In this document: piece by piece, positions 1,865 to 36,039 of the stretch
Numbering within the stretch: the stretch's first letter is position 1
Layout of the letters: every line of letters begins with the position of its first letter
Origin: Octopus bimaculoides
Lineage: Eukaryota
DNA: 64,000 bases
NCBI RefSeq assembly: GCF_001194135.2
Contig: NC_068984.1
Location: 123,282,416-123,346,415, forward strand
Reading direction: 5' to 3'
Notes under the pieces: generated by a model
What the model was told of the DNA's origin: nothing
Seen by the model: the letters and a program-made list of their open reading frames with translations, nothing else
Databases searched by the model: none
Translations under genes and position numbers: made by a program

Positions 1865-1997
1865 GTACTGTCTTGGTCAAGTGTTACACAGCCTTGGTCA
1901 GTATGAGGCTGCAAGTGACTGTCTCCAATTTGCTATGGACTTAGAAGCTAACAGTCCTATCATTCCATTCACTGTCATTCCACGCCTGTTGCACTGA
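1865..1997 (+). CDS. TTC7: Terminal coding exon of tetratricopeptide repeat protein 7 (TTC7A/B-like scaffold of the PI4KIIIalpha complex); upstream exons lie before the window
   Basis: A long polypyrimidine tract ends in ctag at 1864. The exon reads g TAC TGT CTT GGT... = (W)YCLGQVLHSLGQYEAASDCLQFAMDLEANSPIIPFTVIPRLLH*, with TGA at 1995-1997. This matches the recalled TTC7 C-terminus: final TPR, then W..LGEVLQ.QG...AA.(D/E)CF.TALELEASSP..PF.IIPR.L. Confidence 0.9.
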
Positions 1998-2196
1998 CTG
2001 GTATGTTACCGAGAAATGTCGAAATGAAATGTCATGCTTGTTCAGAAGGATCAGCTAATTTCCTGCTGCCTGTGTCTCCTCTCCACCCTACTGCTGCTTA
2101 CCACAGAAGTAAATCATGTTCTAGACACCAAAACCAGCCACCACACAAACAAACAGACAGACAATCTACCCCAGCTAACCAGCCTGTTCAGATGCC

Positions 2197-2286
2197 AATA
2201 AAGTGGATGGCTGGGTAGGTAGACAGCTACAGGGAATGCAGTTAATGTGCTACTTGTTTAGTATGTCAAGTGAAGTTAACAATAAA
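2197..2286 (+). terminator. Candidate polyadenylation signals of TTC7 (AATAAA at 2197-2202 and 2281-2286)
   Basis: Two canonical hexamers 200-290 nt after the TTC7 stop and just before a large trinucleotide repeat tract. No transcript evidence. Confidence 0.4.
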
Positions 2287-2459
2287 GTATTCACTGGTAT
2301 CTATCACCATCCAGCAGGTGTAAAACCATAGCAGCGAAGATGAATAGTTCCACACAACATGCATCATAATAATGGCTGCCTGCTTGGATATGTGTGTTTT
2401 TGCTGTGCACGATGACAACAGAGGGTGTTATTTTTTTGTACATTTTAACAGCAATTCAA

Positions 2460-2815
2460 ATGGTTGTTGTTGTTATTGTTGTTATTGTTATTATTGTTGT
2501 TATTTTATTACTACAATTACTACTACTATAATGATAATATTAATTATTATTAATAATTACTACTACGATTAATAATAATATTAATAATATTAATATTGTT
2601 ATTAATAATAATAATGATAATGATAATATTTTTAATCGTAATGATGATTATTATTATTTGCAGTAATAATAACAATAATTTATTATTATTATTATAGTTG
2701 TTGTTACTTCTATTCTTACTATTATTACTAATAATACCACTACTAAAATGATTATTATTAGCAGTAACAGTAATAGCAATCATTTGTGTTGTTGTTGTTG
2801 TTACTCTAATTACTA
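2460..2815. repeat. Compound trinucleotide microsatellite tract (TTG/TAT/TAC/TAA), with a (GAT)n run near 2998-3065
   Basis: Directly visible; accounts for ORFs 2372-3138. Confidence 0.95.
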
Positions 2816-33700: not shown

Positions 33701-34278
33701 AAATTGCCAAAAATGGTAATCCCCACAAGTTGGGAAATGGTAACAAAATGATGTTGCTCGCATCATAAAAGAGAAAAAACATTCAAAGTAGTTTAGGGGA
33801 AATCTAGTCAGCCATGCCCATCTAAGTGTTTTAATGCTGTACATCATGTTTTTAATTTCCAAAAGTTCTAAAACAAGTGTGAAACACCCATGTGTCCATC
33901 AGTACATTAAAACGGTCAACAGCCTGTAAGTTGTTTAGATTTATAAAAGAAGCTTTGGACTTTTCTAATATTCCTATTACTAATGTAACTAATTAGAAAC
34001 AGGTAAAATAACGCATACCTCCCCACCCCTGCCTATCAAATAAATAGAAACTTACTTAAATCTAAAAAGTCTGCATGAATTGTTAACTTAGTGTCAATGC
34101 AGAATCTACATCAGGACCATGATGTGAAAACTAAAACTCCATTGTAACAACTATGCAACTAATTTATGCTGTGTTTTATATATATATCTATTTTTGTTTG
34201 TCTCTTGTCTTTGAAGAAGATAAAAAATAAAGAAAAGGTAAAAAAAAAAAATACAATACCACTTAATTTACAGTTATC

Positions 34279-34284
34279 TTTATT
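34279..34284 (-). terminator. Candidate proximal poly(A) signal of CaM
   Basis: AATAAA on the minus strand about 380 nt after the stop, followed about 25 nt later by a GU/U-rich element (GTATTGTATTTTTTTTTT). Confidence 0.5.
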
Positions 34285-34661
34285 TGAATGAGATCTGATG
34301 GACCAGCATGGAAAAAGATAGCAAAGAGATTGGCTTGGCTGGAAGGCAGAAATTTTTTTTACATCTTTGAAGGAAAGGAAAAATGAATTTGATATAGTGG
34401 AGTCTACAGAACTAGGTCAGAGAAAGTAGTCAGATGGGATAGGGACATAATTGGTGATCTTACAGCACCACTACCGGGAAGAGATAACTGTACAGACCAT
34501 CCCAGGTACATCTTTTAATTGAATGTGCGACTAAATACAGGACCTTGAGCTGTACACATACAGAAATGAGAGATGCCAGGATGAAACTGCAGTGTGAATA
34601 AACTTTAATTTGCTTGTAATAATAATAATAATATAATAATTATAATAATAATTCACCAGTT

Positions 34662-34690
34662 CTACTTGGAAGTCATCATTGTAACGAACT
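34662..34690 (-). CDS. CaM: Calmodulin coding exon 5 (29 nt, EFVTMMTSK*)
   Basis: tttcag|AGTTCGTTACAATGATGACTTCCAAGTAG. Confidence 0.96.
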
Positions 34691-36039
34691 CTGAAATAAA
34701 AAGAAAACAGCAAATTAACATTTTGACAAGTTATTTATGGTGGATGTAAATATCTCCATTAATGCAATGTAAATCAAATTAACAATTCCAACGAACTCAC
34801 CTTCATAATTAACCTGGCCATCACCATCAATATCTGCCTCCCTGATCATTTCATCAACTTCTTCGTCCGTCAACTTTTCTCCTAAATTTGTCATTACATG
34901 ACGCAATTCTGCTGCACTGATGAAACCATTTCCATCTTTGTCAAAGACACGGAATGCTTCTCTGATTTCTTCTTCACTATCTGTGTCTTTCATTTTTCGG
35001 GCCATCATGGTCAAAAATTCAGGAAAATCAATGGTTCCATTTCCTGAAATTAATATTGAAACCTTCTCACTGCCGATTCTTCATACCAACAACATATTGG
35101 GTAGATTGACAAAATTTAATACTGACTGATTTATCGATACGTCATGTACAGGAATTCCTTATCAAAACAGATTGTACGTAGGAAAGACAAGGTGCTTACC
35201 ATCAGCATCTACTTCATTTATCATATCTTGTAATTCAGCTTCTGTGGGATTTTGACCAAGTGACCTCATTACTGTTCCCAACTCTTTCGTTGTGATGGTC
35301 CCATCTCCATCTTTGTCAAACAAACTGAAAGCTTCTTTGAATTCTGGAGAGTGAAAATAATGATCTTCATTATACTTGACTGCAAATCTAGAAGCTTCAG
35401 ATTAAAAAAAAAAATAACCCCAACAAAAACGGATGAAGAAAAGTGAAATGGTGAATTAGAAGCCATTGGTAGAGAGTAGTAATTAGTGGCATTATTTGAA
35501 CGACTACATTTGTAGATTATGTATGATGAAGTGCAGAGACCAGAAATGTTGGTAATATCCATGCAGCATATAAGGTATCCATCCAGTGAGATATTTGAAA
35601 TAATCCATTATCAGAACAGTTGGTACAGGTCCATAGAAGGGTAAATCCATCAAGCCTCACATGTAAGTAGAATCCAACAATTTGGTGGTGAATTGTACAT
35701 GTTGATATGAAAACAAACTAGTGAAGCAAAACTAAGGACAAGAGAGGAGCAAGAAATTGAAGAGAGTGACCGAAGCATGCAGAGGAGACATAAAAATAAA
35801 CAAGGGAGACAGAAAACAACAAAAACTTACCAGCAATCTGTTCTTCTGTAAGTTGATCAGCCTAAGAAAGAAAAAGGGAGTTTAAAAAAAGAACGATGAC
35901 ATGAGGGGAAAATTTGTCAAAAAACGAGGAGGAATATTAAAAGAAAATGTCATTTGCTATTGTTTAGGAATAGTAAAAAAAAAAAAAAAAAAAAAAAAAA
36001 AAAAAATCAAAGAATGAAACAAGTGGTTTTCCTTACCAT
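34662..36039 (-). CDS. CaM: Calmodulin, complete 5-exon CDS (3+31+144+243+29 = 450 nt; 149 aa)
   Basis: The spliced product is [149 protein letters not shown]. It has four intact EF-hands and all four introns are GT-AG. Confidence 0.98.
34801..35043 (-). CDS. CaM: Calmodulin coding exon 4 (243 nt, EF2-EF4)
   Basis: tttcag|GAAATGGAACC...AATTATGAAG|gtgagt; overlaps the supplied ORF 34715..35014. Confidence 0.98.
35200..35343 (-). CDS. CaM: Calmodulin coding exon 3 (144 nt, EF1 to the start of EF2)
   Basis: ccag|AATTCAAAGAAGCT...GTAGATGCTGATG|gtaagc. Confidence 0.98.
35831..35861 (-). CDS. CaM: Calmodulin coding exon 2 (31 nt, [11 protein letters not shown])
   Basis: ttag|GCTGATCAACTTACAGAAGAACAGATTGCTG|gtaagt. 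Confidence 0.97.
36037..36039 (-). CDS. CaM: Calmodulin coding exon 1 (ATG only)
   Basis: Minus strand reads CCGACATG|GTAAGG. An intron immediately after the ATG is the classic calmodulin layout. Confidence 0.92.

Follow-up and report, generated by a model that had tools for sequence, protein, structure and literature searches.

Calmodulin and TTC7 genes are found together at two paralogous vertebrate loci. The order SOCS5, MCFD2, TTC7A, STPG4, CALM2, EPCAM has been reported in cattle (PMC11654436), MCFD2, TTC7A, and CALM2 share synteny with socs5b in zebrafish (PMC3296744), and CALM1, NRDE2, PSMC1, and RPS6KA5 lie within 500 kb of human TTC7B (PMC5264598). In this study, we analyzed a stretch of 64,000 nucleotides (nt) from Octopus bimaculoides (assembly GCF_001194135.2, contig NC_068984.1, positions 123,282,416 to 123,346,415), which is referred to as the window, and found that the putative last coding exon of a TTC7 orthologue on the forward strand faces an intact calmodulin gene on the reverse strand, an arrangement that resembles the vertebrate CALM1-TTC7B locus.

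Sequence comparison identifies the segment at 1865-1997 as the final coding exon of a TTC7 orthologue. As read from the sequence, its acceptor consists of a polypyrimidine tract and AG (…ttcttctacctag, followed by the G at which the exon starts, 1865); this base completes a split codon, just before which other TTC7 proteins have a Trp, and the frame from 1866 gives YCLGQVLHSLGQYEAASDCLQFAMDLEANSPIIPFTVIPRLLH up to the stop codon. When the exon peptide of 43 amino acids (aa) was searched against all PDB chains, the top matches were human TTC7B (5dse, 9b9g, and 6bq1; E ~1e-11), in an alignment spanning residues 804-843 of 843, that is, the last 40 residues of the human protein up to its C-terminus; the runners-up were synthetic consensus tetratricopeptide repeats (TPRs), which cover only residues 1-30 of the peptide. 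The family-specific tail LEAxSPxxPFxxIPRxL, which in TTC7 follows the C-terminal TPR and ends the protein, is present in the peptide. HMMER, run exhaustively against 1.84 billion representatives, returned mostly generic multi-TPR proteins, plus matches to the whole peptide at the end of the protein; among the latter are TTC7 proteins of full length (831-860 aa), including a Lingula TTC7B. Pfam gave nothing other than TPR signals for the peptide, all of them sub-threshold, and a word-indexed protein search with it found no match. A tblastn comparison of six TTC7 proteins with the window produced a sole match, at 1866-1994; as this is confined to the terminal exon, the remaining TTC7 gene lies upstream of window position 1.

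One public "protein" of 175 aa (P0005) is 98% identical to the TTC7 exon (window ~1654-2178). It spans intron, stop codon, and 3' untranslated region (UTR), with TGA read as Trp, and results from gene calling under the wrong genetic code, on a contig from the same or a sister species.

The calmodulin gene (34662-36039, reverse strand) is intact and has five coding exons (3, 31, 144, 243, and 29 nt) with GT..AG borders throughout. Its product is the canonical 149 aa, with four EF-hand matches (E 4.7e-43); among the matches listed, it is identical at 149/149 aa to the Trichinella, Trichonephila, and Anopheles calmodulin models, and its identity to vertebrate calmodulins is 97-98%. The exon blocks align with the sponge, coral, annelid, insect, nematode, sea urchin, and turbot loci that we fetched.

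The two genes are convergent, and the distance between their stop codons is 32,664 bp. For the gene search, stop-to-stop open reading frames (ORFs) were compared with Pfam after low-complexity filtering (cut-off E <= 0.01); the minimum length was 70 aa across the window, and in the interval ORFs of 40-69 aa were included as well. No ORF of at least 70 aa anywhere in the window and no interval ORF of at least 40 aa had a match, no Rfam family reached threshold anywhere in the window, and tblastx of all fetched loci against the window recovered nothing beyond calmodulin, the TTC7 exon, and noise of low complexity. An STPG4-like gene was sought in the interval with tblastx against the STPG region of the annelid Owenia, which was negative, and with a six-frame scan for the motif of SHIPPO (sperm-tail PG-rich, STPG) repeats (PGPxxY / PG[PA]GxY), which found none. 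Short exons of a fast-evolving gene would escape such a search; at the sensitivity reached, there is no recognisable gene between TTC7 and calmodulin. The preliminary description of this DNA had a TTC7 exon ending at 1997 and facing a calmodulin stop at 34662 some 33 kb away with no recognisable host gene between them, and on all of these points, coordinates included, it proved correct. The interval DNA is AT-rich and dense in (TA)n, (CA)n, and (CT)n tracts and in several families resembling short interspersed elements (SINEs) in both orientations, and at least 25% of it is repeated inside the window itself. Its longest non-repeated stretch (28930-34661, 5.7 kb) adjoins the calmodulin stop codon and probably contains the calmodulin 3' UTR. 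The coordinates of these features are collected in Table 1.

Table 1. Positions in the window of the TTC7 exon (as assigned by sequence comparison), the interval with its assembly gaps, and the calmodulin exons.
Feature	Position	Strand	Remarks
TTC7 orthologue, putative last coding exon	1865..1997	+	43 codons, one split-codon base, and stop TGA 1995-1997
Interval between stop codons, 32,664 bp	1998..34661		Presumed 3' UTRs, microsatellites, SINE-like repeats, four gaps
Assembly gap	7212..7565		Starts at (TA)n tract; unrelated sequence on far side
Assembly gap	8949..9005		Exact 89-nt duplicate on both flanks (8860-8948 = 9006-9094)
Assembly gap	21524..21659		Between (TA)n tract and SINE-like copy
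SINE-like repeat copy	21660..21888		91% inverted pair with 23055-23283
Assembly gap, 10 N	28889..28898		Within poly(A) run
Calmodulin coding exon 5, 29 nt	34662..34690	-	Includes stop TAG 34662-34664
Calmodulin coding exon 4, 243 nt	34801..35043	-	Sequence, cross-species blastn
Calmodulin coding exon 3, 144 nt	35200..35343	-	Sequence, cross-species blastn
Calmodulin coding exon 2, 31 nt	35831..35861	-	Sequence, cross-species blastn
Calmodulin start codon, sole coding bases of exon 1	36037..36039	-	ATG, then GTAAGG

The closest counterpart among the loci compared is that of turbot (L007), where the calmodulin-1 model (P0372) sits on a chromosome record of 22.7 Mb. Its opposite-strand neighbour is a gene of 988 aa whose span starts 6.3 kb past the calmodulin end, and tblastn identifies this gene as TTC7B, its last four exons being 93-100% identical to vertebrate TTC7B. 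NRDE2(+), calm1(+), and TTC7B(-) are thus consecutive in turbot, and the ends of the convergent TTC7B and calm1 genes are 6.3 kb apart. As in the window, CALM1 and TTC7B are immediate vertebrate neighbours, lying 3' to 3' with no gene between, as shown directly in turbot; at human 14q32.11, where NRDE2 is likewise upstream of calmodulin, their proximity is documented (PMC5264598). Convergent adjacency in the same relative orientation is thus present in a protostome and in a deuterostome. The two loci differ in spacing (6.3 kb in turbot versus 32.7 kb in the window), have no non-coding sequence in common, and differ upstream of calmodulin: NRDE2 stands just upstream in turbot, whereas nothing recognisable is found in the 28 kb upstream in the window (36040-64000), a segment with eight further assembly gaps where no ORF of at least 70 aa has a Pfam match and NRDE2 was not seen.

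The pairing of TTC7 with calmodulin is real at both vertebrate paralogous loci. The TTC7A-STPG4-CALM2 locus (human 2p21, cattle chromosome 11) resembles the window in holding TTC7 and calmodulin in one small neighbourhood. The preliminary description gave both human loci as tail-to-tail: for the CALM1/TTC7B type this stands through turbot, and for the other locus the order TTC7A-STPG4-CALM2 stands through published work (PMC11654436). STPG4 intervenes at that locus, whereas the window interval is without detectable SHIPPO/STPG-like sequence. TTC7A and CALM2 are presumably convergent there, and human CALM2 and STPG4 are presumably on the same strand.

We consider it probable that the adjacency of TTC7 and calmodulin descends from an old gene neighbourhood of animals. 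The ancestral order would have been calmodulin, an STPG4-like gene, and TTC7, still displayed by vertebrates at CALM1/TTC7B and at CALM2/STPG4/TTC7A; in the lineage of the window, as at vertebrate CALM1/TTC7B, loss or relocation would have removed the STPG-like gene, unless it is present in undetectable form. What is left would be an unremarkable convergent arrangement of two housekeeping or neuronal genes in a genome rich in repeats, the 33 kb between them being made up of 3' UTRs, microsatellites, and SINE-like insertions. By our estimate, a named pair would be adjacent in a shuffled genome of ~20,000 genes with a probability of ~1e-4, and less with the orientation fixed, and only a handful of chance adjacencies shared by octopus and human would exist genome-wide. 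Given that few chance adjacencies are expected and that hundreds of conserved gene pairs are retained across metazoans (Irimia et al. 2012, PMC3514665), inheritance is the likeliest source of the pair. It is from the identities of the genes, their orientation, the interval without a recognisable gene, and the vertebrate counterpart, all of them observed, that we infer the common ancestry of the adjacency.

A number of results weigh against this inheritance. The adjacency is found only in vertebrates and in the window, and no third lineage with it was seen. Our survey of other invertebrates covered 10 kb on either side of species-specific calmodulin models in Owenia, Anopheles, Tuta, Trichinella, Strongylocentrotus, Porites, and Halichondria, and tblastn with six TTC7 proteins found no TTC7 within 10 kb of calmodulin in any of these seven non-vertebrate species; in Owenia, Strongylocentrotus, and Porites, a 10-kb flank is too short, so the absence of TTC7 there is uninformative. 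In the other four, a different gene stands 3' of calmodulin, with no TTC7 there: a TBP-family gene and PRELI in Anopheles marshallii, a convergent M17 peptidase in Tuta absoluta, small genes without Pfam matches in Trichinella spiralis, and, in the sponge Halichondria panicea, a convergent 284-aa SHIPPO-repeat gene 0.3 kb downstream, beyond which come PACS, a calmodulin-like gene, a COP9/PCI gene, and ZW10. The annelid Owenia fusiformis has a same-strand gene with SHIPPO repeats 4 kb downstream of calmodulin that extends past the locus end, and no gene is called within 10 kb downstream in Strongylocentrotus and Porites. Among 50 TTC7-relative loci scanned in metagenome contigs, none has calmodulin, only two (L028 and L034) having useful 3' flanks; there is no calmodulin in the 9.9 kb and 4.6 kb past the TTC7 end on these two contigs, both of them crustacean-like, a label that comes from the TTC7 C-terminal tail. 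In addition, neither tblastx nor the motif scan detected STPG-like sequence in the window, and the TTC7-calmodulin linkage itself depends on scaffolding over the gaps at 7212-7565 and 21524-21659.

The preliminary description had gone further and called the pair a candidate ancient bilaterian microsynteny that predates the protostome-deuterostome split. An orthologous convergent pair with a real vertebrate counterpart is what stands of this claim. No further lineage has joined it, and the dating gained nothing from our survey, the pair being still known from two lineages and TTC7 not lying within 10 kb of calmodulin in seven more species. No TTC7-calmodulin microsynteny is named in the searchable papers and supplements, a search that did not extend to the pair list of Irimia et al. 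2012; the supplement of Schmidbaur 2022, which covers Pfam-annotated blocks only, has no TTC7, CALM, or STPG4 match, none of the three occurs in Robert 2022, and the literature gave no position of Drosophila Ttc7 (CG8325) relative to Cam.

The pairing of calmodulin with an STPG-like gene, in contrast to that with TTC7, involves a different partner that was not found in the window. The Owenia STPG-like gene (L002 14034-20029) has a SHIPPO-rpt match of 30.3 bits against a cut-off of 20, and the Halichondria SHIPPO-repeat gene (L004 10959-12438) adjoins the calmodulin 3' end. Both occupy the same 3' flank of calmodulin, which matches the mammalian order CALM2-STPG4-TTC7A; they differ in orientation, which is same-strand in Owenia and convergent in Halichondria. 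A PDB search with the Owenia STPG-like peptide returned no relative. Since both an annelid and a sponge carry a SHIPPO-repeat gene 3' of calmodulin, some of the vertebrate CALM2 neighbourhood appears to be of great age, which lends indirect support to inheritance of the TTC7-calmodulin pair. Microsynteny of calmodulin with STPG-like genes may be older and more widespread than that with TTC7, and the adjacency seen in sponge, annelid, and mammals is possibly the more general observation; an ancestral order calmodulin-STPG-TTC7 is a reasonable hypothesis.

The sponge locus (L004 1-20676) also places calmodulin near a double-kinase RSK/MSK-like gene, ubiquitin-RPS27A, PACS, a second calmodulin-like gene, COP9/PCI, and ZW10. 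The human counterparts RPS6KA5, PACS2, and RPS27A are on 14q32 or 2p near CALM1 and CALM2, and the neighbours of sponge calmodulin hint at an old chromosome-scale linkage.

Inheritance of the TTC7-calmodulin adjacency has to be weighed against other explanations. It is conceivable, if rather unlikely, that the genes were not ancestral neighbours, sharing perhaps a chromosome, and that coleoid reshuffling joined them, the likeness to vertebrates being coincidental. Such a juxtaposition would account for the fact that 0/7 other non-vertebrate lineages show the pair within 10 kb, with another gene in place in 4; the finding is also post hoc, drawn from the neighbours of one window among many, and the old chromosome-scale linkage suggested by the sponge locus and the human positions would raise the odds that the genes became adjacent again. 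Coincidence is harder to reconcile with the same convergent orientation in the window and at two vertebrate paralogous loci (PMC11654436) and with the low prior for a named pair becoming adjacent, and loss of the adjacency is expected anyway in the fast-rearranging Diptera and nematodes. That the contigs of the TTC7 exon and of calmodulin were wrongly joined in scaffolding is very improbable. There are four N gaps between the genes, and the two at 7212-7565 and 21524-21659 start at (TA)n and have unrelated sequence beyond; they cannot be judged from sequence, so both the linkage and the 33 kb figure depend on scaffolding there. The other two look continuous: because of its exact 89-nt duplicate flanks, gap 8949-9005 is read as a contig overlap and probably represents unmerged contig ends with continuous sequence, the gap and ~146 bp being artefactual, and gap 28889-28898, inside poly(A), is probably continuous as well. 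None of the four touches an exon (0 exons), so the reading frame is not at issue. It is very unlikely that a random mis-join would reproduce the gene order and orientation found in vertebrates.

A further possibility, which appears improbable to us, is that selection has kept the genes together through shared cis-regulation, for instance by calmodulin enhancers lying between the genes or within TTC7 or by a common chromatin domain, coupling Ca2+/calmodulin to plasma-membrane synthesis of phosphatidylinositol 4-phosphate. Both vertebrate paralogous pairs were kept after genome duplication (PMC11654436, PMC3296744), and the pair persists in a lineage known for genome reorganisation (PMC9023564). 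The biochemical links given in the preliminary description were found in the literature: calcineurin, which calmodulin activates, binds to the PI4KA/TTC7B/FAM126A/EFR3B complex and regulates it (PMC8523714), and Arabidopsis NPG1 is a calmodulin-binding structural counterpart of TTC7 (PMC8774046), so that calcineurin-PI4KA/TTC7/FAM126 and calmodulin-NPG1 can both be cited in favour of coupling. Calmodulin has hundreds of targets, however, and a functional link to nearly any neighbour could be found. Conserved gene pairs, and co-regulated ones typically, are enriched for head-to-head and not for tail-to-tail arrangements (PMC3514665), the interval consists largely of repeats, and several lineages lack the pair in the flank of calmodulin. 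The conserved non-coding elements that the preliminary description had proposed to look for did not appear: blastn of all fetched loci against the window returned only calmodulin exons and simple repeats, with no non-coding similarity to any locus, in species too distant for a strong test. A stronger version, to which we likewise give little credence, would have a three-gene block of calmodulin, an STPG4-like gene, and TTC7 dating from early animals and held by regulatory constraint, either calmodulin enhancers or a shared 3' chromatin boundary reaching into TTC7. Parts of such a block are seen as calmodulin-STPG in sponge, annelid, and mammals and as calmodulin-TTC7 in a cephalopod and in vertebrates (two paralogous loci); if it were true, the dosage of the Ca2+ sensor would be tied to the scaffold of the plasma-membrane PI4-kinase complex.

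If the adjacency is ancestral, the pair is one more among the several hundred catalogued ancient microsyntenies; if real, it is a further member of a well-known class and not a new kind. Like the microsyntenic pairs and genomic regulatory blocks of Irimia et al. 2012 (PMC3514665), it consists of unrelated genes that are adjacent in distant phyla. Those pairs are defined across several lineages and are enriched for head-to-head arrangements or for developmental regulators with their bystanders (PMC3514665), whereas the pair in the window is tail-to-tail and known only from two lineages, with no conserved non-coding elements found among the loci compared. An ancestral pair would be unusual in being tail-to-tail, in joining two non-developmental genes, and in having survived vertebrate duplication twice as well as coleoid reshuffling, and it would offer a convenient test case for regulatory landscapes that hold convergent pairs. 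Overall, the annotation is correct and the evolutionary reading built on it is plausible and thinly supported; nothing indicates a new mechanism.

The comparison of calmodulin loci also gave observations on the gene itself. Exon 4 (243 nt, 34801-35043) is undivided in the sponge, coral, annelid, mosquito, and nematode loci, and it is split in sea urchin (L005 24904-25033 and 26210-26331) and apparently, at the sea urchin's site, in turbot (L007 16570-16707), where only the 3' part was aligned. Since the exon is one block elsewhere, this distribution suggests that the intron may be deuterostome-specific. Two calmodulin genes stand head to head ~5 kb apart in Porites lobata (L006 3000-5310 on the reverse and 10001-13683 on the forward strand), and Owenia has two tandem copies ~21 kb apart (L001 11486-12395 and 32679-33675), which a 204-aa calmodulin model spanning 29 kb fuses.

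Apparent remnants of mariner-like ORFs in the window (e.g., 6453-7144, 12179-12457, and 62058-62426) had no Pfam match at E <= 0.01 and are not claimed as such. One unclassified SINE-like family, with copies of ~150-230 nt at 65-94% identity in both orientations, occurs at 3407-3578, 12693-12880, 18430-18597, 21660-21888, 23055-23339, 51249-52133, 56926-57088, 57566-57710, and 59052-59222. A second repeat family, also unclassified, is present at 1122-1237, 3682-3777, 19305-19410, 25769-25874, 26186-26281, and 27862-27957.

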